In this document: piece by piece, positions 1 to 63,196 of the stretch | How positions within the stretch are numbered: position 1 is the first letter of the stretch | Layout of the letters: each line of letters begins with the position of its first letter | NCBI RefSeq assembly: GCF_001194135.2 | Contig: NC_068994.1 | Span: 4,211,519 to 4,275,518 of the forward strand | Reading direction: 5' to 3' | DNA length: 64,000 nucleotides | Origin: Octopus bimaculoides | Lineage: Eukaryota | Made by a program: the position numbers and the translations under genes | Notes under the pieces: model-generated | The model's input: only the letters and a program-made list of their open reading frames with translations | Told to the model about the DNA's origin: nothing | The model's database searches: none

Positions 1-2989
1 CTGTTTGACAATCAATGTTGTGCTTATGTCCCTGTAACTTAGCAGTTCGGCACAGGGGACCAATGGAATGAGTATCAGGCTGTAAAACAAACAAAATATA
101 AATAAAATACTGAGGTGGATTCATTTGACTAAAACTTTGTCATCATTCTGCGAGCTGGCAGAGTCGTTAGCACGCTGGGCAAAAAGACCATTTTGTCTGT
201 CTTCATGTTCTGAGTTCAAATTCCACCAAGGTCCACTTTACTTTTTATCCTTTCAGTATGGCCACAGTCTAATGACTGATACAAGTGAATGATAACACAC
301 ACACACACACACACTCTCTGCCATACACATTCGATGTTATTTGTTTCCAGTCTTCCAATGGTAAAAAATTTTTAAAAAATGCTTGTCTTGCTTAGAAACT
401 GATGGGGATTGGCAGGAGGAAGGGCATCTGGACATTGGAAATTTGCCTCCTTAAATTCCATAGTGTGGTGTGATTTAGTAGACTGCCATTTCTAGCAGGT
501 CATGCAACCATATAGTGGCTCCGTTCGGTTTGGGTGAGCACAACTAGGGTTTCTGACCCTGGGGAAGGGAAACAATTAAGACTGGGTCTGTTTGAAGAAC
601 TGCATCTCCTTCTTAACCCCAGCTGGGAGTATATTTATGGAGGAGCTGGGGTGGAGTGATTTGGGGTCAAAGGTCACTGCATTTATTTGGATGTCAGCTT
701 GAAGGTCACTGCAGTCATTAAATTTTGGAGGTCAGGTCAGTTGAAGTAATTATTTTTATGTTAAGAGTAGGGTGGAGCTGTTGTTGTTTAACCCTAGGTC
801 GTCCCTGATCAAACAGACCCCTAATCAAATACATATTCAGCCCGTTGTTTATCTAGGACTACATTATAGAATATGTTCTTGATTGACAGTTTGCGTTTTG
901 CAGTAATGATTATTATTACTATGTAAGGAGTTTATTATTCCCTGTGTGAACCCTTTGTGGATAAAGAAATCATCATCATCGTCATCATTCTGCAAGCTGG
1001 CAGAATCGTTAGCACCCCGGGCAAAAACAACATTTTGTCTGTCTTTACGTTCTGAGTTCAAATTCCACCGACATCCACTTTACCTTTTCATCCTTTCAGG
1101 GTCAATAAAATAGCTGTTGTGTACTGGGGGTTCGATGTAACTGACTTGGCCCCTCTCCTGAAATTACTGCTCTTCATTAGGTTCCCTGTCCTCGACGTAG
1201 CTATCGCACCAGACACATCTCCACTGGGTTACCTGTTCTAAATGTATTTGATACCCAAGTCCATCTCTAGTAGGTCACAGTCTTAGACATGGCTAATCTA
1301 TGAAACCATCTCCAGTGGTTGACCTTGCCCTAGATAATATGGCTGATCATCTCCAGTAGTATTTAATTGCAATGAAGTTATATGACATTAGCTTTCACAT
1401 TCATATGAAAAGAAAACAGGTTCTGTAAAAAACTGTTGGTCATCCGTAAGAACGAAATATGTTACAGTGAAGTTTGGATAAGTTCCTATGCTACCGGAGA
1501 CATTTTTGACTGAAATCTTTTTGTATTCTTAAACACCAGATTTCTTCTCCATCACGCTTAACAGTATTTCGTCAGTCAAATTCTGCTGAGATCAATTTTG
1601 CCTTTTATCCTTTTGGGGATTGATAAACTAAGTACCAGTTGCATACTGGAGTCGATTTAATTGACTGGGCAGAGTAGAAAAGAATATTGGTGACTGATTT
1701 CTTGGCATTTTTTTCCCTTTTTATCACAATAATTGCAAGCTCTTGATCGATATTAAAAAAATTGAAATTTAAAAAAAAAATTTTCGGATTTAAAATATGA
1801 TTTTTATAATTTTTAACTCTAAACTTAGTATTTAGGAAAAATTTCAACAAAGTTCTAAAAAACTTTTTCTTTTTTTTTTTTCTTTAAATCTGCGATTTCC
1901 ATTGTTGGGTACAGGAATCTGGGAGAAAAAAATTGGGACAAAATATTCATGTATGCCAGCTCTGGAGATTATCTGATGATGTCAGTATTTCCATTTTCAC
2001 TTTTTGTTCATAAAATAAAAGAACACTGATTTATTGTTTGTTTGTTTTTTGTCTTTACATGTGGGTCTACTTGATCATAATAAGGTCAGAAGTTCAGGCT
2101 TTACCTCTGACCACCATTACAGCCATTGTAACTTGACTTTGACCAAGGCATCTATAGTATACCTGGCTGAGAATATAAACAACTTCCACCCCTCACCTCA
2201 CAGTTCAGTGGTCAGTAGGGAACACCCAGATGTGTAATAAACACTTTTATACATATTACACCCAGCTTCCCAATATGGATTTTATTGTTGTTGTTGCTGC
2301 TGCTTATTGCTTTGTTTTTTATACCTAAATGGCTGTCCTATTGTTAACCAGCCAACTACTGTGCCATAGTTAAATATATATATATTTTTGAAAGCATTCA
2401 TAGTAAATTATAGATTTGTCTCAATAGGTCTGTGACTTATATTGAAAATAAGGAGACTGAACTGGGTAGAATTAGCAAGGCCACGAAGTGGTGTCCCTCG
2501 CTGAAGGTCTGAATGTAATGTATTGATTGCCTTGAAAAATTTGTGCTTTTTGAATCTGTTCATAAAAATGTTTAGCTCTCAGCCATCCCTGATTGTGCAA
2601 AGCAACCCTTTAGGATCACGTTGGACTGTTTTGTCTAAACTTTGAGATAGTGATTACTGGGAAATTTGGTTGCTGTTTCTAGAAGGTCAAACTACCCCAT
2701 ACATACCGTTTTGAGCTGTTTAAGTTACTATATCTAGCAATTTTAAAGCTATCTCTCTCATATTTTGCCCATTTATTCTGTTTTTATTTTATATTAGAAA
2801 TGGTGAATAATAGTGGCGTTGGTTACAGGTTTCTTATGAACCAGTAGTATAGTTCTTTTGCATTTAGAGTGACAAGTCAGTGTCTGTCTATTTTTAACTC
2901 AATGCAGAAACATCTCAAATGGCACGTCATTTCTAAATCACAGTACTTAAGTTTTTGTCAACAATATTTTCTCTATCCTCAACACTCAC

Positions 2990-3375
2990 AGGCGTCTGCG
3001 TAATTCCTGTCTACCGAACTTTATTCCAATTGTCTAACATGTCACACAATAGGATCGAACCTGCGAGGCGAAGTTCCAACGCAGCCAGTTTCCAAACCTG
3101 ACCAGAAAGGCAACGGTATCAGACAAACGTGTATAAAATGTGAAAATTTAAAGCAGCAAAATTTAACTGAATTTTAAAGTCCAGCAACTTACTTCATGAT
3201 ATGTGGCGTGTTGCACAGATATGAAAGCTAGCCAGTTGGCCGTCATCTCGACATGTTTGTGGACTGAAAGCAAGGAAGAGTCATTGAGGTCTTTTCCGTC
3301 TTCAGAGAACGACGCTGATTGGAAACGAGGCTGCACTGGTTTGGGTGATAATTAATGTGGTGGCGGCGGTGGTGG
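2990..3375 (+). promoter_or_regulatory. Putative promoter and non-coding first exon of ZNF-A
   Basis: CpG is locally retained. Plus-strand donor GGTGG|GTAAGT at 3376. Downstream acceptors at 9016 and 9421 lead to ZNF-A. Confidence 0.35.
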
Positions 3376-7567: not shown

Positions 7568-7959
7568 AGAAAATTTTGGGGTACTCAAAGTCTGTGGCAA
7601 AAAGAGAAAAAAAACACTGGAATTTTGAAGTAATCACACACAATCAACTGAAGATGACTTCTTTGTCGGGAAAATGTCTGGACAACACTTTTGTTCTTTC
7701 TGTCTGTGTTTCTTGGTGTGAATAGAGGTTTGCAGTAATGTTTTATAACCTAAGACAAATTTCCTGCAAGGCTGTCAATTGAGAATGACATGTGGGTGTG
7801 TCTTTCTGAAACTCTATCTGTAATTGAGTTACTCATTATAAAGAACCAACCTATTCCATCTAATTAAAATTGTCGTCGTCATCATCATCATCCTTTAATG
7901 GACATCAAAGGAGGAGGATGATGTAATATTAAATTAAATTCATTTCATATATAGGAACA

Positions 7960-9860: not shown

Positions 9861-12182
9861 ATGGAGAAGACTTCATCTGATAAATCGGGGAAAAACCTGG
9901 TCTCCAACACCAGCGATCGGAACCACCCTCATAGCATTTGTTCAGCAAGCAGCAGCAATGGTACCAGCTGTGCGAATAGTCCGAGCCATGTCACTGCCGC
10001 CATCAACATGCATTCAAAGCAGTTCATGCAGCATTATCCATGGCAGGCTCAACGCTTCCCTCACGTCCCCGACAAGTCGTGGTGCAGTGAGATATACAGC
10101 AACCAGTTTGCTCAGCGTTGCTACTTACAGTCTCATGGTATTTTCCCATCAGCTGGCACTACTGCTGCGGGCAGTTGCTCCGAGAAGGCTTTCCACTGCG
10201 CCGCCAGCTACATGAACCAGTTCACGCAGCGGTGTTTCCTGCAAACGCACGAACGGCTGCAGAACTTCGATAAACAGGCAATGGATGTTAACGACTACAT
10301 GAAACACTTGCATGGGGGCACGTACCAGCCGAAACACTGCCAGGCTGCTAACAACAATAGCATAGTGAGTAGTGGTTGTGGTGGTGGGAGTAGTTGTAGT
10401 GTTGGGGGTGGTGGCAGCTGTAGCATTGGCGGTGGCGGTGGTGGTGGTGGAGGTAGTTGTGGTGGTGTTGGTGGTGGTAGTAGTAGCTGTAGTGTTAACC
10501 TGACCAGTAACAGCAGCTGCGGCAACACCAACCATCGCAATAGCGTATCCAGCAGCAGCAACAACAACAATAACAACACTAACAGCAACAATAACAACAA
10601 CAACAACAACAACAACACCAGCAGCAGTAACGGCAACACATCGGTTTATCCAAAGCAAGTAGCTCAGGTACAGCATGCTGTGAAAACACAGCCACCCTCT
10701 TCACCAAACACAAAGGTGCCACTTCAGCAGCCCCATCACATGCTCCTTCTGCAACCCCCTCCACCCATCGAGAAACCCTTCCACTGTGACCTTTGTCCAA
10801 AACAGTTTGCACGTAGGAATACGTTACAAATGCACAAACGCATTCACACAGGTGAGAAGCTGTTCCATTGCAGCTACTGCGACAAGCGATTCGTGCACCG
10901 AGATAAACTTCAAATACATGAGCGGACTCATACGGGAGAGAAACCGTTTCATTGCACTTACTGCACGAAACAGTTTTCTCGTAAGGACAAATTAAAGATT
11001 CACGAGTGCTCTCACACGGGATTAAAACCTTATCACTGCAGCTACTGCGACAAACGGTTTGTCCAAAGAGAAAAACTTAAGATTCACACAAGGATCCACA
11101 CGGGAGAACGTCCATATTCGTGTGACATTTGTTTCAAGCAATTTGCTCGCGGTGATAAGCTTCAAATTCATCGTAGAACTCACACAGGAGAGAAACCATT
11201 CCACTGTGAATACTGTCCGAAAAACTTTGTCCAGCGTGATAACTTGGTTATACACAGAAGGACCCATACTGGGGAGAAACCATTTTCTTGTGAAGTATGT
11301 TCAAAGCGATTTGCTCGCGGTGATAAGTTGCAAATCCATCGTAGAACACATACGGGAGAGAAACCGTTCCATTGTGAATACTGTCCGAAGACTTTTGCTC
11401 AAAGAGATAATTTAGTCATACATAGAAGAACCCATACAGGAGAGAAGCCCTTCTCCTGTGAATTCTGTCCCAAGCAGTTCTCTCGGAGTGATAAGCTCCA
11501 GTTGCATCGCAGGACTCACACGGGTGAGAAATTGTTCCATTGTAAGTATTGTTCAAAGCAGTTTGTTCAAAGGGACAAACTTCAGATCCATGAACGAACT
11601 CACACAGGCGAGAAGCCGTTTCACTGTGAGATTTGTTCAAAGAAGTTTGCTCGTAAAGACAGGCTGCAAATCCACAAGAAGACGCACACTGGTGAGAAGC
11701 CCTTCCACTGCGACCTTTGCCCGAAGCAGTTTGCACAGCGAGACAACTTGAAAATTCACCGGAGGATACATACCGGTGAGAAGCCTTTCCACTGCGAAAT
11801 CTGTTCGCGCCAGTTTGCCAGAAAGGACAAATTGCAGATTCATCGGAAAACTCACATGATTGAGAAAGTTTCGTTCAACTGCGACATATGCCACAAGCAA
11901 TGTGAATCAAAAGAAATGTTGATGAGTCACCAGCAATTAAATCATGCACCACCACCTCCGCCGCCGCCACCACCACCACCACCACCACCCCTCACCAATA
12001 ACGACACCTCACATTTATGCTGCCAGGTTTGTAATCGGGAATTTGCAACTGTCGAGAAGTTACAAAATCATGAAAAGACACATAAACCAGTGAGAAATAA
12101 TTTTCTGAAACCCACATCGTGTAAGAATATCAAGGAATACACCCCAATGAGTACATTGCTGTGGCAATCTATCTACCCCTAA
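9861..12182 (+). CDS. ZNF-A: multi-C2H2 zinc-finger protein, 773 aa (13 tandem fingers at 10779-11855 plus 2 spaced C-terminal fingers; poly-G, poly-N and poly-P tracts)
   Basis: Uninterrupted ORF starting in aggATGg context. 13 CxxC-x12-H-x3-H units joined mostly by TGEKP-type linkers (84-nt period), then [22 protein letters not shown] and [21 protein letters not shown]. Paralogue of ZNF-D. Confidence 0.95.
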
Positions 12183-19756: not shown

Positions 19757-20902
19757 TTATTTCGTCTGATAAAGCTGTGCTGCCGCTGGGGCAGAGACGG
19801 TGACGGCTCCTTGGTACATTTGAATGGTAGGGAAGATCTGTGTGGTCGCCGGAGATATCTGTATTGTGCTCGGAAAGATATGTGTGACAGGATTCATCTG
19901 GGTGTAGAGCGGATAGACTTGAGTGCCGGCCGGGTAGGTGGCTTGAGTGCTGCTCGCCACCACGTTCGAGTTGAGGTGGTGGCTAACATTCACTCCCGAG
20001 TGCTGTGGTTGGCTGGAGATGTCGACAACCGAGGCACTTGCTTGTTGGCTAGCAACCACTGCGTGTTGTGATGTATTCACACTGACAGCACAACTGGTAT
20101 TCACTCCGGAGTTACTGTTAGCGGCAACTGTAGTGCTGCTAGTCTGTTTGTCTTTGTTAGGTTTATTATTGGTATTTGAAGAACTACTACTACTACTACT
20201 ACTACTGTTACTATTACTACTACTACCACCACCACCACCACCAGTACTGCTGTTGTTGTTGTTACTGCTGCTGATTGGTGTTGGGGAGGCTTCTGTTGTG
20301 ATTGCTGTTGTTGTTGCCAGTGTAACGTTGTTGTTGTTGTTGTTGCTGTTGTTGCGTAGCGGCACGCAGCTTATTTTGATGCCGTTCTTGTTTGGCCGAT
20401 TGTGTTTGACGAGGTGGTCTTTGCGGGAGAAGGCGAACCCACAGATCTGACACCTGAACGGCCGCTCGCCCGTGTGGATCCTCTGGTGCACCTTCAGGTA
20501 CGACCGGTGCACAAACGTTTTGCGACAGATCTCGCAGCTGAATCGCTTCTCCAGCTGATGCGTGCCTCGGTGCCGTGCCAGGTGGTCGCTGCGGTAGAAC
20601 GCGCAGCCGCAGATCTGACACTTGAAAGGGCGCTCACCGGTGTGAATCCTCTTGTGGAGCTTCAAGTGGTCTCTTCGCGACAGGCACTTGCCACAGATGT
20701 CACACTTGTACTGCTTGTCGGATGTTGCCCCCGGTGCCACCGACAGAGCCATGCCACTGTCCCCTGCAATATTAGCAGCAGCCAGCACGACAGCTTGTTG
20801 ATTACCGCTGCTGCTGTTGTGAAGAGTGTGTCCATGGTGATGGTTATGGTGATGGTGATTGTGATGATGATGGCCAATATGATTGCAACTATTTCCCTCC
20901 AT
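19757..20902 (-). CDS. ZNF-B: C2H2 zinc-finger protein, 381 aa (N-terminal His-rich tract, 3 canonical fingers plus 1 lacking the last His, low-complexity N/S/G/Q tail)
   Basis: ORF with [73 protein letters not shown] and [17 protein letters not shown]. Polypyrimidine tract plus AG acceptor just upstream (minus strand, 20917-20912). Confidence 0.92.
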
Positions 20903-21960
20903 CGCAACTCCCTATCTAACACATACAGGAAAGATAACAGACGTAGTTCAGTCTAATGGCTGCACACAGCCATGTCAGGATGTAATTCAAGAAAAGACTC
21001 AGTTGTATTTAGTTAACGATTCTTGGAAGAAAACGACATCTTGTAGAACATGGATGATGTCTTTTTTTACTTTAGTTTTGTTGTTAAACAACAAAGAACA
21101 AGAAAATGGTAGACAATAATAAGACAATTTCTAATTCCTCTTCCTTTGTTGTTTGGATATTAACATCCAAAATCCAACTCAAGAATCTTCACTGAACCAA
21201 GATATTCATGGATTATCTTAGGAAATGGCAGTTCAATGTAGGATTAAATTCTTGGAAAGTTATTTGCTTTTAATTACTGTTGTTGATTATCAGTATCAAT
21301 AATGATGATGATGTTAATGATAATCTGATAATTTAGTGATCTGTGATTAATGATTGAAGAACTGGGTTTCTTAATCACTATGGAGCATCTATAAATTGTC
21401 ACGTGCCTCAACGACACCAGAACACTTGTGGAATAAAAGTTGAACCACTTCAGACAATTCTGAATTCTTCAAGTATTGAAAAAAAATCAGCCAGTACAGT
21501 ATCACCATTCACTATATATACATGTGTGTGTAAATGTGTTTTTATGCGAAGCTGTTGAGCGTCAATACACGTGTATTTGTGTGTGTGTGTAGATTGAAGG
21601 GCAATACTTATGATAATCAAGTGAGTTGGACAAACCTGTATCTGATGGCACTATGTGAGAATTCTTGGGATCACAGAGTGAGACTGTCTTCCATGTAAAA
21701 ATCTGTATGTATAGATGTGTATATGTATGCCTGCATATAACATCTATAATTGTCTATATATATAGACACACAACACAATATGTCCTATAAATCAATATGT
21801 ATGTATGTATAAAGATGTATGTGTCAGGTAGCAGGTGTAGTTTCACAGTTCTCTTCCTGAGGGGTCTCAACTAATCTGTAAGGAGGCTTTCCAAACAGAA
21901 AAATCCTGAGGGGAAAAAAACCCCAAAAACTCCTTTTCTCTCAAAGGGTAAAATGCAGGA

Positions 21961-31906: not shown

Positions 31907-33124
31907 TCACATCAATGATTGGATGTTATTGTCAGAGGATCCTTGATTGTCACCTTTTCTCTGACCAACTGTGTAGGAGGGAATGGTCAAGGTACTGGGG
32001 CAGCCATTCCATGTCCACGAAGACGCTGGGGAAGTGTTCCGTTTCCAGTCGTAGTGAGCTTGTGAGGGCATCTGCTGCTGCTGCTGTTGCTGTTGTTGTT
32101 GTGGAGGCTGTTGGTGTGCAGCTGAAGCTATAGAAGCCGTGGTGGTTGTGGACCTCTGTGGCTGTGAGACACTTTTCTGATGGGAACACAGGGATGATGC
32201 AATGTTGTCGAGGTTCAGGGTTGAGAGAACCGGCTGTTTTAGAAGAGTCGTCGTCTTGGATGTTGAAGTGGCTGATGCTGGTTGGTGAGAAGACGAAGAC
32301 ACTGATGCAGCTTGATAAGAATGATGTTGTGCTGAGCTGACACCTGCAGCATTCATTAAAACAGGAGTGTTCAAACCACTAATTGGAATCGTTTTACATA
32401 GTTCGTCAGCAGAAACCGGGGTCAAATGGTGTGAAATGTCATGTCTGTCTCCATGGAGAAATTCCTTTTTTAAAAGATTGCCACACTTTGCATTCGAGAG
32501 TACCGAAGTCATATTGGTTTTGTCGTGAGGATGAATAGTTTGAGAGCAACTGTAATGGTTGGTATGAGTGCGTTCATGCTTGTTTAGGTGGTCTTTCCGA
32601 GAGAAAGCTTTCGTACAAATCTGACAACAAAATGGCTTCTCCCCAGAATGGGTTCGTTGATGGATTTTCAGTTTGTCATTTCGAGAAAAAGCTTTTGGGC
32701 AAATATGGCAGACAAATGGTTTTTCTCCTGAATGAGTTCTGGCATGGTTTTTTAGCTTGTCTTTACGAGCAAAAGCCATAGGGCAGATATCACATGCAAA
32801 CGGGCGTTCTCCTGTGTGTGTCCTTTCATGGATCTTTAGTTTGTCCCTTTCTGGGAACGCTTTACAGCAGAAGACACAGATGAAATGCTTCCCTAATTCG
32901 GGAGCCAATTCGTGTTTCTTCAGATATGCACGGAGGGTAAACCGCTTACGGCAGACATTACATTTGTAGGGTTTCTTGTCGATGTACGACTGCCGGTAGC
33001 TGACGTAGGTGTATGGGGTGGACAAGGGTGGTGTTGATGGGCTCGGGGTTGTGAATGGACCAAAGCCATAGGAGTGATTGCTTCCGACAACGGGTGAGAA
33101 TTGAACCTCTTGGTTTGCATACAT
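31907..33124 (-). CDS. ZNF-C: C2H2 zinc-finger protein, 405 aa (1 atypical plus 4 canonical fingers at 32564-32968; S/T-rich tail with poly-Q10)
   Basis: ORF with TGERP/SGEKP-linked fingers ([84 protein letters not shown]). An in-frame TAG upstream of the ATG closes the ORF. Confidence 0.92.
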   Translation of the reverse strand: MYANQEVQFSPVVGSNHSYGFGPFTTPSPSTPPLSTPYTYVSYRQSYIDKKPYKCNVCRKRFTLRAYLKKHELAPELGKHFICVFCCKAFPERDKLKIHERTHTGERPFACDICPMAFARKDKLKNHARTHSGEKPFVCHICPKAFSRNDKLKIHQRTHSGEKPFCCQICTKAFSRKDHLNKHERTHTNHYSCSQTIHPHDKTNMTSVLSNAKCGNLLKKEFLHGDRHDISHHLTPVSADELCKTIPISGLNTPVLMNAAGVSSAQHHSYQAASVSSSSHQPASATSTSKTTTLLKQPVLSTLNLDNIASSLCSHQKSVSQPQRSTTTTASIASAAHQQPPQQQQQQQQQQMPSQAHYDWKRNTSPASSWTWNGCPSTLTIPSYTVGQRKGDNQGSSDNNIQSLM

Positions 33125-34299
33125 GCTGAGTGTTCTGTTTATGAGTCTGAGGCGTAATTGCTACGAACGTATGCTGACAATGATCTTGATGACGATATTG
33201 ATAACACTGATGATAATGATGATGTGACGATGACTATGAGTCTGGTGAGGGACTTACATATAAAGTTACCAAAATATAACGTAATTAAATAGACATCTTA
33301 ACATACATAGAGTGACTATATTTCATCAACAACTACATGTGACTGTATATGGTTATAATATATATATATATAATTGTATAGAGTTATATATTTACTACAC
33401 TATGACTCGAAATAGAGGAGTATTAGACTAGAAACATTCACAGTTTCAGTTTAATCACAGCCTAGACAGACCTTATAACTGTCTATGGTCTACGGAGAAG
33501 GAACTATGTATAAACCATACCAGTTATATACTGGGGTGACAGACGCGAATGACAGTTATTCAAGTAGACAGGAGCAGTATACTTTCATGAAGACCAACTC
33601 TTGAACAATTTTGTGGATGAGGTTTAATTAGGGGCTGATCAATTGCAGTCAGCCCAAACATAAACACAGAGAAAGGGCACTGACTGCAGACCATGGTGAG
33701 GGAAGGGGCCAACTAAAAGATGGGTAAGCGGTAGGGTTAATGCAGGATTAAAAGATATGGAGATTAGTCCATTTAGGGAACACACAAAATAGGGGTTCCA
33801 CAGAGTAGCTAACCCCTAAACTATTCCTTACATATACAATCATCTTTATGCCCTTAACAAAAGTCTGTAAGTAATCACTTGACTTGCGAAAAGTAACAGC
33901 CAGTTATCCCTTAAACCACAGCCTACTGTCTTAAATAAGGAAAGGAAGCATTAAAAAATGTGGTCCTAGACATCCCCTAAAAAGACAGGATGGTCATGGC
34001 TGGAGTACTTTTGATCATAGGTCTGCTTGTTAGGCAACAACTCTTAACAGAGTGATTATACAGGAGAGAAGGAGTGATCAAATTATACGAAAGGGGTCAG
34101 TTTTATTTTGGAATGGCAAAAAGTGTTATCTTGTGAAATAGCAGGGGTCAAAATGTTTTTTCTCCTTTATTAAAGCATGCTAGTTATAGACCCTTGTCAA
34201 ATATCCCCACTAAAATGGTAGCGTATATATTCTTATATTTCTGTATATAGTTCACAGATGAGAACCAGATATTTCTGTACATAACATAAAAATCATAGC

Positions 34300-58791: not shown

Positions 58792-59176
58792 NNNNNNNNN
58801 NNNNNNNNNNNNNNNNNNNNNNNNNNNNNNNNNNNNNNNNNNNNNNNNNNNNNNNNNNNNNNNNNNNNNNNNNNNNNNNNNNNNNNNNNNNNNNNNNNNN
58901 NNNNNNNNNNNNNNNNNNNNNNNNNNNNNNNNNNNNNNNNNNNNNNNNNNNNNNNNNNNNNNNNNNNNNNNNNNNNNNNNNNNNNNNNNNNNNNNNNNNN
59001 NNNNNNNNNNNNNNNNNNNNNNNNNNNNNNNNNNNNNNNNNNNNNNNNNNNNNNNNNNNNNNNNNNNNNNNNNNNNNNNNNNNNNNNNNNNNNNNNNNNN
59101 NNNNNNNNNNNNNNNNNNNNNNNNNNNNNNNNNNNNNNNNNNNNNNNNNNNNNNNNNNNNNNNNNNNNNNNNNNNN

Positions 59177-59349: not shown

Positions 59350-61326
59350 TCACCAGGGACAGAGGATAGAGCTAACCGGAGTATACTCTCTTAAACTTTT
59401 GCAAGAATTTGGCTTCAAGAAATTGTTTTTCACAGAGCCATGACTCTTCTGATGACTCTGCAGCTTGAGTGCAGACGCAAATTGCCGTGGGCACATGTCG
59501 CATTGCAACAGAGGTTCAGTGTGTATCTTCATGTGCAGCAGGACAGCTTCCTTGTCCGGGAACTTCTGCAGACAAACATGGCACTCGTGTAGTGCTGAAT
59601 GATCTTCGTTGTGCTGATGAGCAACAGCAGGAACCGTAATGATGCTCTCGTGGTTATTCATGGCCAATATGTGGGCGTCCTCGGTGCCGTTGCTGACCTG
59701 CATTCTCTGCTGTTGCACAAGCAAGTCTTTCTTCATGCAGATATCACAGGGTTCGGTGTGGCTCTTGTCAGGTGTGTTGTTGCTGTTGAGATTATTTAAG
59801 TGGATACGTCTGTGTATCTGTAATTTGTCACTGCGATTAAAATCACGGGAACAGAATTCACAGTGGAAAGGTTTCTCTCCAGTGTGAATCCGACGATGGA
59901 CCTGAAGCTTGTCCTTTCTGGCAAACTGCCGGCTGCAAAGATCACAGTGGAAAGGTTTCTCTCCAGTATGTGTCCTTTCGTGTATCATAAGCTTATCTCT
60001 CTGGATGAACTGTTTCGGGCAATAATTACACTGAAAAGGTCTGTCCCCTGTGTGGATTTTCCGATGCAGTTGCAGCTTATCACGGCGGGAAAAGCATTTT
60101 GTACAGATCTCACAAGCAAATGGTTTCTCACCTGTGTGAGTACGTCTGTGGATGACCAAGTTGTCCTTTTGGGCAAAAGATTTGGGACAAATGTCACAGG
60201 CAAAGGGTTTCTCCCCAGTATGTGTCCTACGATGAACCTGGAGTTTGTCCCCACGAGAGAACTGCTTACAACAAATATCGCAAGAGAAAGGACGCTCTCC
60301 GGTGTGAATTCTCTCATGAATCTTCAGTTTCTCTCTTTGAATGAATCTTTTGCCACAATAGGTGCAAGGAAACGGTCTTTCTCCAGTGTGAATCCTTCGA
60401 TGTATTTGGAGTTTATCTCCTCGTGAAAACTGTTTCAAACAAAACTCGCAGTGATAGGGTTTTGCACCGGTATGGACAGTCTCGTGAATCTTCAGCTTAT
60501 CTTTGCGGGAGAACTGCTTCGGACAATAACTGCAGTGGAATGGTTTCTCTCCTGTGTGTGTCCTCTCGTGAATCTGCAACTTGTCTCGGTGAACAAACTG
60601 TTTGGCACAATAGTTACACTGGAACAACTTCTCACCCGTGTGAATCCGTTTATGGATCTGCAACGTATTCCTTCTTGTGAACTTCTTGGGACACAGATCA
60701 CAATGGAATGGTTTATCTGGCACTGTTTGCGATGACAACAGAAGGTGACCCGATGTAGAAATACGACTCACCATACTGGTAGACGTCAGGTCCTTCTTGA
60801 AGAGGGCCATGGGTTTGTGTTGAATATGGATGGGGTCAGCATTACAGTAAGTATCGCTGCAGTTGTTCTCCTTGCCAGCAATTGCATTGCAGTCATTGTT
60901 CCGTTTCTCTGCGACATCAGCAGCAAGTGACGGTTGTTTCTCAAGAACTCCATTAGTAATGGCGCAGCCGTTCTCTCCAGTACACTCTTGTAATGACGAC
61001 GGGGTTAAGAAACAGTTCGGCATAAACTGTTTTCCGTAAATATCATCAATAGAGATTTTCTGATTTGTTGGAAATAATCCATGTGTCTTTAAGTAACAAC
61101 GCTGAAGGAATTGGTTACTCAAGATCTGATGTGTAAAGTGGGGTGGTGGTGGTTTGGGGCTTGTAGCCGGTGGTCTCCGATGAGCTGCTGGTATTGTGTA
61201 GGGTTGAGCAAATTGTCTTTCATATGCAATGGCATGTGAAGGAGGTCGGTCAGATGTTGCTACCTCGTTACTTTTCTTAATGATTGCTTCCTCGGTTATT
61301 TTTGACAGGTTAGTTTTATCCATCAT
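59350..61326 (-). CDS. ZNF-D: multi-C2H2 zinc-finger protein, 658 aa from the first ATG (11 tandem fingers at 59800-60708, a vestigial CDIC and 2 C-terminal fingers)
   Basis: The ORF track starts at GTG 61401, but the first ATG is at 61326 (MMDKT..., compare ZNF-A MEKT). 11 linked fingers. Strong acceptor ttttttctattttcag|g gives an exon start at 61484. Paralogue of ZNF-A. Confidence 0.95.
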   Translation of the reverse strand: MMDKTNLSKITEEAIIKKSNEVATSDRPPSHAIAYERQFAQPYTIPAAHRRPPATSPKPPPPHFTHQILSNQFLQRCYLKTHGLFPTNQKISIDDIYGKQFMPNCFLTPSSLQECTGENGCAITNGVLEKQPSLAADVAEKRNNDCNAIAGKENNCSDTYCNADPIHIQHKPMALFKKDLTSTSMVSRISTSGHLLLSSQTVPDKPFHCDLCPKKFTRRNTLQIHKRIHTGEKLFQCNYCAKQFVHRDKLQIHERTHTGEKPFHCSYCPKQFSRKDKLKIHETVHTGAKPYHCEFCLKQFSRGDKLQIHRRIHTGERPFPCTYCGKRFIQREKLKIHERIHTGERPFSCDICCKQFSRGDKLQVHRRTHTGEKPFACDICPKSFAQKDNLVIHRRTHTGEKPFACEICTKCFSRRDKLQLHRKIHTGDRPFQCNYCPKQFIQRDKLMIHERTHTGEKPFHCDLCSRQFARKDKLQVHRRIHTGEKPFHCEFCSRDFNRSDKLQIHRRIHLNNLNSNNTPDKSHTEPCDICMKKDLLVQQQRMQVSNGTEDAHILAMNNHESIITVPAVAHQHNEDHSALHECHVCLQKFPDKEAVLLHMKIHTEPLLQCDMCPRQFASALKLQSHQKSHGSVKNNFLKPNSCKSLREYTPVSSILCPW

Positions 61327-61768: not shown

Positions 61769-63196
61769 NNNNNNNNNNNNNNNNNNNNNNNNNNNNNNNN
61801 NNNNNNNNNNNNNNNNNNNNNNNNNNNNNNNNNNNNNNNNNNNNNNNNNNNNNNNNNNNNNNNNNNNNNNNNNNNNNNNNNNNNNNNNNNNNNNNNNNNN
61901 NNNNNNNNNNNNNNNNNNNNNNNNNNNNNNNNNNNNNNNNNNNNNNNNNNNNNNNNNNNNNNNNNNNNNNNNNNNNNNNNNNNNNNNNNNNNNNNNNNNN
62001 NNNNNNNNNNNNNNNNNNNNNNNNNNNNNNNNNNNNNNNNNNNNNNNNNNNNNNNNNNNNNNNNNNNNNNNNNNNNNNNNNNNNNNNNNNNNNNNNNNNN
62101 NNNNNNNNNNNNNNNNNNNNNNNNNNNNNNNNNNNNNNNNNNNNNNNNNNNNNNNNNNNNNNNNNNNNNNNNNNNNNNNNNNNNNNNNNNNNNNNNNNNN
62201 NNNNNNNNNNNNNNNNNNNNNNNNNNNNNNNNNNNNNNNNNNNNNNNNNNNNNNNNNNNNNNNNNNNNNNNNNNNNNNNATATATATATATATATATATA
62301 TACATACATACATACACACACATCTGCATATAAATGTATTTGACAAAACATATCACAACATACTTTTTTTGTCTTATCAGTTTACAAGGATACTAAATTT
62401 TACATGCAAAAATACGTACCACCATTTAATCTAGAATTTGGATCAAATGAATGTAAGAAAGATCAAAGCAATGAGAAATACTGCAATGGTTTAGTCCCAG
62501 GCTGGGGCTGACTGAGGAAACTGGCTTAACCCTTTTGGTTAAGTCTGCTTCCCTAAGACTTGCTACGTGGCTCAATGTGTGATGCATTTTTTTCATTAGT
62601 AATTGAAACAAAAGCAGTACATTTCAACACAAATATGGTAACAAAAGGGTTAAAGTGATCTAAATTAAAACCATCCATCAAAATTCCATGTTAATTTACG
62701 TTCTGAGCATCAGCTTAATAACAGAAAGGTATTTGACTAAATTTTTCATTATTTTAAAATTAATTGACACACAAAGGCAGAGAATTCCACATCGACATCA
62801 ACCAATGTGTGTTTACTCCTTCCTTATCATTTTCTGATGGCAGGCTTCGATCAAAAAAGACCTGGCTGCTATTTTTAGCATGTTAAGTGTCCACATAGAG
62901 GCTCAGATCCCGACTCTCAGACAGGGATATAAATTGCTCTGATGGTATGGGCAAGGCAGTGAGCAGTTTCACTTTGTCTCATTCCTAAATAGTATACAGC
63001 AACTTTAGTGCAGTAATTTACATCAGCTTAATTAACAATAGTTCGTTTACACAATTAATTATGATAAAATATGCCCCAGCGAAATATCTAATTAAATTCT
63101 TTTTCTTTTTAAATATTATAAATGGAAAAACATTCATCAGGAGATATTTTGAGTTGTAATGGAAATGAACATACACACTCGTGTGTGCTGTGTGTG

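Follow-up and report, generated by a model that had tools for sequence, protein, structure and literature searches.

KRAB (PF01352), which recruits TRIM28/KAP1, is a conserved non-finger module on tandem C2H2 arrays, found in a clustered, duplicated family and presumed to be its effector arm. ZAD of insects, SCAN, BTB/POZ and FiNZ of fish are likewise taxon-restricted additions that each define a poly-zinc-finger subfamily. Smaller peptides are also known: WRPW/WRPY (Hairy/HES and Runx; Groucho/TLE), eh1 (FxIxxIL) and PxDLS (CtBP) are short and conserved, often lie at the extreme C terminus of a DNA-binding protein, contain an essential Trp or aromatic residue and dock a corepressor. In Ikaros and Hunchback, a separated C-terminal finger pair comprises the dimerisation fingers, and in insects the single-copy gene Kr-h1 encodes a short conserved C-terminal box after its C2H2 array that is needed for repression. 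Here we describe a C-terminal tail of about 30 residues shared by two single-exon poly-zinc-finger genes, A and D, which lie 47 kb apart in one gene cluster within a 64,000-nucleotide stretch of the octopus genome (C14:4211519-4275518, hereafter the window; open reading frames [ORFs] read with the standard code).

The octopus tail shares with KRAB the traits listed above and differs from it in others. KRAB is N-terminal, about 75 residues long and usually on its own exon, whereas the octopus tail is C-terminal and in the same exon as the fingers, and there is no sequence similarity between the two. Further, with at least 18 genes the octopus family is a small one, and it evolves slowly, unlike the rapidly turning over KRAB zinc-finger family. 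FAX of Xenopus, a lineage-specific finger-associated module, is also N-terminal and larger than the tail. The corepressor peptides offer the closest functional analogy, as the tail might dock a partner in the same manner, but the octopus tail is longer and bipartite, and their consensus occurs in no family member. As in Ikaros and Hunchback, the clade of A and D carries, near the C terminus, a pair of fingers separated from the array; in octopus, however, the conserved element lies beyond the finger pair and outlives it, the last finger having decayed in two members. The Kr-h1 box differs in having no visible sequence resemblance to the tail, in coming from a different phylum and in belonging to a single-copy gene. 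Finally, ZAD, SCAN, BTB/POZ and FiNZ (the last discussed in PMC10547256) are all N-terminal and larger, and those that have been solved (SCAN, BTB, ZAD) are folded, in contrast to the C-terminal, predicted disordered octopus tail. No such module was detected in A or D. On its sequence, the tail is thus a C-terminal, disordered, bipartite finger-associated motif, as far as seen limited to cephalopod-like genomes and a member of no known class that we tested.

A first-pass annotation of the window had pointed out a block of 24 residues common to A and D. Translation yields exactly the A and D peptides that it quoted, and its count of 16 identical positions is reproduced. The quoted motif ends too early, though: it had been placed directly before the stop, but A goes on for six codons (WQSIYP) and D, which reads VKNNFLKPNSCKSLREYTPVSSIL-CPW, for three. 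The family consensus extends through LWQx[IL]Y, and the octopus tails taken together close with [ST][IL]Y[PS]. At the other end, the tail was said to follow the last finger directly, and it begins two residues past the final His (KP in A, GS in D). Within these boundaries the tail is bipartite, comprising Box 1, NNFLKPxSCKN, and Box 2, IxE[YF]xPxSxxLW[QH]x[ILY]. Box 1 is limited to the A/D and p3.21-type clades, while Box 2 is family-wide. The tail always lies within about 15 residues of the stop, or up to about 21 in the protein P0004 described below.

To define the family, the octopus genome (2.34 Gb) was searched with peptides and degenerate DNA patterns. Members were taken as single-exon ORFs with at least nine fingers and the pattern I-x-E-[YF]-x-[PS]-x-[STN]-x(1-3)-L-W-[QHG] about 15 residues or less from the stop. 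At least 18 poly-zinc-finger ORFs end in Box 2 in this way, all on chromosome-scale contig C14 and mostly between 3.2 and 5.0 Mb. By peptide search alone, 12 long zinc-finger ORFs, again all on C14, were seen to end in the tail. A degenerate DNA pattern for CK[NS]x[KR][ED]Y[TS]P gave nine matches in the whole genome, every one at the end of a zinc-finger ORF on C14, and the reversed pattern gave none, which places the tail beyond chance. Outside C14, the broad Box 2 pattern detects mostly repeats resembling short interspersed nuclear elements (SINEs). Additional members (p3.24, p3.94, p4.68, p4.94, p3.90 and p3.73) end in NKT[IV]EEFPPMS[TD]YLWQL or in NNMEELSPMNNYLWQL, followed by the stop. 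In all, the family makes up about 1% of octopus zinc-finger genes.

Gene A fits the family definition fully, and D fits it except that LW is changed to LCPW, making D a divergent member. The family-invariant Trp (TGG) is Cys (TGT) in D, a new Trp stands two residues on, and the stop comes three codons earlier than in A (59353-59370, -). Argonauta hians (P0006) has the same LCPW ending, as does a closely related genome that is probably of a second Octopus species (P0040/L092); being common to Argonauta, the Trp-replaced state of D is old and maintained.

Two tail-like relics were also observed in short frames without a zinc-finger ORF. One, at C7:110353135-110353233 (+) in the same assembly (G000, locus L013), reads NVFNMKPHSCKVNQMATPGSNLIWQSFYS and is the sole copy off C14; the other, at C14:12365507-12365599 (-) (L014), reads ETCKRIKEYIPVSPVLSQIVQP. 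Both are probably decayed family members.

To establish how the members are related, a phylogenetic tree of the C-terminal 330 residues was generated with FastTree. Four clades are found, each with a tail. D and its Argonauta counterpart are sister to A plus six paralogues (support 0.96 to 1.0), which indicates that the A/D duplication predates the Octopus-Argonauta split. Counterparts from other species fall in three clades, namely that of A/D (Argonauta and the second Octopus D copies), that of p3.24 and a third in which they sit next to p3.21, while the p3.94 clade contains copies from the octopus genome only. As judged from these sequences, the tail is older than the Octopus-Argonauta split and than the split of the four family clades.

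Selection on the tail was assessed at the codon level. Of the 16 residues identical between A and D, 14 are encoded by different codons, and synonymous sites are saturated in all regions of the pair, showing that the likeness reflects protein-level selection and not gene conversion. The proportion of nonsynonymous differences (pN) between A and D is 0.20 in the tail, compared with 0.15 in the main array, 0.36 in the last finger, 0.40 in the two terminal fingers together and 0.53 in the spacer. Two statements of the first-pass annotation are borne out by these values: the tail is better conserved than the two fingers preceding it, and the spacers do not align. When seven paralogues of the A/D clade are pooled over 24 tail codons, pN is 0.08 and the corresponding synonymous value (pS) is 0.93. 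A and p3.66 differ at these codons by 19 synonymous and no nonsynonymous changes, A and p4.06 by 14 and none, and the tail of A is identical or near-identical in five paralogues despite saturated synonymous sites. The selection that had been proposed is thus real and purifying at the amino acid level, and the equal conservation of synonymous sites that recent conversion would leave is not seen. GTGAGA, with which the tail begins in A, was considered as a splice donor and rejected, the paralogues having GTCCGG, ATTCGT and GCCAAA there.

Comparison with other species extends this picture. The prospect that orthologues lack the tail is not borne out: counterparts of A, of D and of two other clades keep theirs, and carriers include Argonauta hians, two other probable octopods (designated by run accession) and one more distant organism. 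The counterpart of A in SRR8281683, probably another octopod, has 76% nucleotide identity with A, yet 29 of 30 tail residues are identical with pS at about 1. Among the regions measured in this pair, nonsynonymous divergence (dN) is lowest in the tail (0.029); it rises to 0.069 in the last finger and 0.106 in the array, and reaches 0.53 in the atypical finger and spacer. For D and its Argonauta hians counterpart (GCA_054771915.1), dN is 0.108 in the tail, 0.133 in the N terminus, 0.145 in the terminal fingers and 0.206 in the spacer, and the array is nearly frozen at 0.017. Between D and L092, a Logan genomic contig rather than cDNA with 92% nucleotide identity, the tail has seven synonymous and no nonsynonymous differences.

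A 30-position profile built from 12 tails was searched against 1.84 billion representative proteins, clustered at 50% identity, and gave three credible matches: P0003, a truncated call of the A counterpart; P0006, the Argonauta D; and P0004, a protein of 633 amino acids with pseudo-fingers and an array that closes in LVRNNFLCASSCKSIKDYTPLSAHLWQTLYS. Matches P0005, P0007 and P0008 were rejected: the first is an ORF inflated by repeats, the second a repeat peptide found in unrelated metagenomes and the third a protein of bacteria. No named non-cephalopod carrier was matched, which in a library clustered at 50% identity is weak evidence of absence. Word-indexed protein searches with the tails of A and P0004 alone returned nothing or the query only, and full-length searches were dominated by unrelated poly-zinc-finger proteins, being informative for the D counterparts and the p3.24 clade only.

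The best octopus-genome match of P0004 is p3.21, with which it is colinear at 36 to 45% identity and pairs in the tree (support 0.87). P0009 is 99% identical to P0004 and, like the long-type Logan protein P0067, comes from run ERR3431203 (sources of P0004, P0009, P0010 and P0067: ERR12408771, ERR3431203 and ERZ21867824). P0067, the Octopus vulgaris 'ZNF45-like' protein P0016 and its Argonauta counterpart P0017 have the distal half of the tail only, ending in KPIHEFPSVTNYLWHTI or YLWQL before the stop. P0067 is colinear with P0016 at 43 to 50% identity, compared with 79 to 80% between Octopus and Argonauta. One organism well outside the octopods therefore carries both tail types, so that both clades predate that split.

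Two observations concern the contigs themselves. L095 (Logan SRR8281683; 187-2804, -, versus 1580-3215, +), which holds the A counterpart, has ankyrin-repeat ORFs on the opposite strand, and the genes called on it overlap the zinc-finger frame. The contig may be chimeric, and P0003, a public gene call of 85 amino acids, covers only part of a frame that is at least 546 amino acids long there. On L026 (ENA ERZ21867824), a SINE-like element at 7700-7880, 3' of the P0010 gene, has dozens of dispersed copies in the octopus genome (70 to 96% identity over 45 to 180 bp). This repeat is no more than suggestive of a cephalopod source.

The first-pass annotation also held that the tail is not derived from a finger and did not recognise it as anything known, and both points stand. 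Against a hidden Markov model (HMM) built from 151 fingers of the tail-bearing family, the tails score -1.6 to -3.0 bits, at the level of shuffled sequences (median, -2.2; 99th percentile, 2.0), whereas the N-terminal pseudo-fingers of the same family, serving as a positive control, reach 10 to 27 bits. The finger preceding the tail has lost its zinc ligands (Cys/His) in p4.06 (L005/L046, C14:4.06 Mb) and in p4.78 (L006/L047, C14:4.78 Mb), where it reads NDLDIKPFALIHELENQKRLQ and NTEICSKPHCTEMDDLQLMKRPQ, respectively; the tails of both are intact. A long spacer, acidic or of low complexity, precedes the tail in p3.21, p22.2, p30.1, p44.7 and p3.24. With the tail untouched beside decayed fingers and spaced from fingers elsewhere, it is no adjunct of the last finger.

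No Pfam family matched any of four tails at an E value of 10 or less, and a PDB profile search gave only a 13-residue match (E = 0.03) in an unrelated 260-residue chain. The motif strings were not found in the literature searched, nor were the words 'motif' and 'C-terminal' in the cephalopod C2H2 survey. A and D have no match at an E value of 1 or less to KRAB, ZAD (PF07776), SCAN (PF02023) or BTB. Regular-expression scans of 17 family proteins likewise found no PxDLS, WRPW, eh1, LxxLL, SNAG or PxVxL. Written as broader patterns, the Groucho/TLE peptides (WRP[WY], F[KR]P[WY] and eh1 FxIxxI[LM]) and the CtBP peptide P[LVIM][DEN]L[STV] are also absent from these 17 proteins, 'RRT' occurring only inside the finger sequence HRRTH.

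Structure prediction is consistent with a disordered tail. With 11 aligned sequences of the last finger and tail, AlphaFold2 gives the finger a predicted local distance difference test score (pLDDT) of 85 to 90 and the tail 55 to 59, with short helices at IKEY and STLLWQSI. In full-length p3.66 the tail scores 31 to 33 without secondary structure and the pseudo-finger region about 30, the full context adding no confidence; both regions of this protein are predicted to be disordered.

A and D align end to end in their N-terminal motif, array, separated terminal fingers and tail (Table 1). Both belong to the tandem C2H2 proteins, with C-x2-C-x12-H-x3-H fingers and TGEKP linkers (PF00096, PF13465); PF13465 matches A in 14 to 15 stretches (E = 3e-91) and D in 12 to 13 (E = 1e-78). 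The closest named proteins to the window are from Octopus vulgaris and Argonauta hians. The proposed KRAB-less architecture of N-terminal motif, periodic array and tail is common to at least 18 genes, except that its N-terminal 'motif' proves by HMM score to be a pair or trio of Cys-less degenerate fingers. These follow the pattern F-H-[C>N]-x-x-[C>Y]-x-x-Q-F-x-Q-x-C-Y-L-Q-x-H-x3-H, in which both His are retained and both Cys replaced. They occur together with the tail in A, in D and in every other full-length member read, are conserved across paralogues and in P0004, and are predicted to be disordered.

Table 1. Positions of genes A and D, their tails and other parts within the window
Feature	Position	Strand	Description
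Gene A	9861-12182	+	Single open frame, 773 aa, with pseudo-fingers, an N/G/S tract of low complexity, 13 canonical fingers, a separated pair of terminal fingers and the tail
A tail	12090-12179	+	30 codons; Box 1 12090-12128, Box 2 12129-12179, stop 12180-12182
A pseudo-fingers	10071-10139 and 10182-10253	+	Cys-less; 16.1 and 13.5 bits vs family finger HMM (shuffled 99th percentile about 3)
A main array	10779-11855	+	13 tandem C2H2 fingers, near-uniform recognition helices
A atypical penultimate finger	11874-11945	+	Fast-evolving together with spacer; dN 0.53 vs A counterpart
A poly-proline spacer	11946-11990	+	Measured jointly with atypical finger
A last C2H2 finger	12015-12083	+	Adjoins tail; pLDDT 85-90
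Gene D	59350-61326	-	Single open frame, 658 aa; architecture as A, 11 canonical + 2 terminal fingers; colinear counterparts in 2 other species
D tail, VKNNFLKPNSCKSLREYTPVSSILCPW	59353-59433	-	27 codons; Box 1 59433-59395, modified Box 2 59394-59353, stop 59352-59350
D two terminal fingers	59589-59521 and 59508-59440	-	Upstream of tail; dN 0.145 vs Argonauta
D main array	59800-60708	-	11 tandem C2H2 fingers; dN 0.017 vs Argonauta
D pseudo-finger remnants	61224-61174, 61143-61078 and 61062-61000	-	Conserved in Argonauta

Other features of the window were recorded alongside. The array fingers of A and D have near-uniform recognition helices, which suggests from their sequence that the arrays bind short tandemly repeated or low-complexity DNA. 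A contains long poly-Gly/Ser/Cys, poly-Asn and poly-Pro tracts (10350-10700 and 11946-11990, +), at the sites of which paralogues have poly-Ala, poly-Pro or poly-Gln, the last reaching a length of about 100 residues in p4.78; the antisense ORFs listed over these tracts are low-complexity artefacts. The window, which is eukaryotic, includes assembly gaps (N runs) and microsatellites. Two gaps (about 58840-59175 and 61770-62280), flanked by (TA)n/(TATG)n microsatellites, lie on both sides of D, the first starting about 175 bp 3' of its stop and the second 5' of the ORF, so that the untranslated regions and promoter of D are incomplete in the assembly; two other species, however, confirm where the ORF itself ends. 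The window also holds two short, unrelated zinc-finger ORFs at 19757-20911 (-) and 31907-33160 (-), with four and five fingers and long low-complexity regions; both lack the tail and the pseudo-fingers.

What might such a tail do? We consider that it is a bipartite short linear motif docking a partner protein, a reading to which we assign a probability of roughly 0.5. It is conserved yet disordered, independent of finger position and near the C terminus, and has invariant aromatic, proline and hydrophobic residues, all of which fit a short linear motif; and since no further effector can be recognised in the family proteins, we favour cofactor docking. Under this proposal the tail, lying in the disordered C-terminal extension of a small, old cephalopod tandem C2H2 subfamily, would dock a partner acting in trans, for which a transcriptional cofactor or a regulator of chromatin is the most plausible candidate. 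The invariant F, Y/F, P, L and W would fold onto that partner, a weak helix being predicted over STLLWQSI, and the docked tail would supply an effector arm to DNA binders that have no KRAB. T/S-P phosphorylation could modulate docking in the A/D and p3.21-type clades only. The phospho-regulation at TP raised in the first-pass annotation can therefore be clade-specific at most, since the long clades have EFPP, EFPS or ELSP at this site.

Several points weigh against docking. The docking motif is argued by analogy, from the general behaviour of conserved disordered peptides; none of the catalogued corepressor or coactivator peptides tested matches the tail, and AlphaFold2 yields no confident structure for it. 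TP is not family-wide, and D and its counterparts keep the tail after losing the otherwise invariant Trp, so that the requirement for Box 2 is not absolute. Carried by about 1% of octopus zinc-finger genes, the tail cannot be the general effector of the expansion.

A rather unlikely alternative is self-association, in which the tail would bind the N-terminal pseudo-fingers or the separated terminal fingers, in cis or in trans, leading to auto-inhibition or to homo- or heterodimerisation like that of the Ikaros/Hunchback finger pairs. The co-occurrence of tail and pseudo-fingers in every full-length member examined fits this idea, as do the two fingers set apart from the array beside the tail in the short clade and the clustering of all members as paralogues, which could heterodimerise. 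However, modelling full-length protein brought no gain in confidence for tail or pseudo-fingers (both with pLDDT of about 30), p4.06 and p4.78 do without the terminal finger, and the long clades have no separated finger pair right before the tail.

Less likely still, the tail could govern the fate of its own protein. It might serve as a localisation signal, as a WxxI like those that interact with LC3, or as a degron, either C-terminal or phosphorylation-dependent, T-P-x-S-T being similar to the TPxxS/T type. By reading, EYTPMST and WQSI do fit the loose regular expressions for degrons and for LC3-interacting regions, and the motif is always near the C terminus. Yet in the long clades TP becomes PP or PS and WxxI becomes WQL before the stop, and the variable extensions after the motif (PGLQNPV, or 21 residues in P0004) speak against recognition of a free C terminus. 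Also by reading, the tail lacks the basic cluster of a classical nuclear localisation signal, and its spacing falls outside the export-signal classes.

It is highly improbable that the tail is a decayed finger or a peptide that aids DNA binding by the last finger, although it adjoins a finger in the A/D clade and a forced alignment, made by reading, brings F, C, Y, L and Q/H into approximate register with the positions of a finger. Its HMM scores equal those of shuffled sequences, while true degenerate fingers of the same proteins reach 10 to 27 bits; a proline falls inside the would-be helix; and the tail stands apart from all fingers in five members and persists where its neighbouring finger has been lost. 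Recent gene conversion, a DNA- or RNA-level element or chance can practically be dismissed: the location of A and D in one cluster had made conversion worth testing, but no support is left for any of these with 2 of 16 identical residues sharing a codon, a pooled pS of 0.93, an A/D duplication older than the Octopus-Argonauta split and no pattern match in the reversed control.

With docking as the preferred reading, a bolder proposal may be put forward tentatively, as possible though doubtful: that an old subfamily, coleoid-wide and possibly wider, uses the Box 1/Box 2 tail to recruit a dedicated cofactor. The tail would then be a functional counterpart of KRAB-KAP1 that arose independently in molluscs, with the pseudo-fingers as a second, co-evolving interaction surface. 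C2H2 zinc-finger genes number from many hundreds to thousands in octopus genomes, and no effector domain of the octopus proteins is described in either of the two papers searched, the cephalopod C2H2 survey and the metazoan ZNF paper. Carried by only about 18 genes, the tail bears on what octopus zinc-finger proteins do after binding DNA, and if the proposal is true it would be the first effector motif for the cephalopod C2H2 expansion. According to that survey (PMC12513265), coleoid-wide duplicates are the most highly expressed. The tail marks a slowly evolving, cross-species subfamily inside an expansion usually called lineage-specific and fast-evolving, and about 30 residues with no nonsynonymous against 14 to 19 synonymous changes between old paralogues provide an experimental handle for finding its partner.

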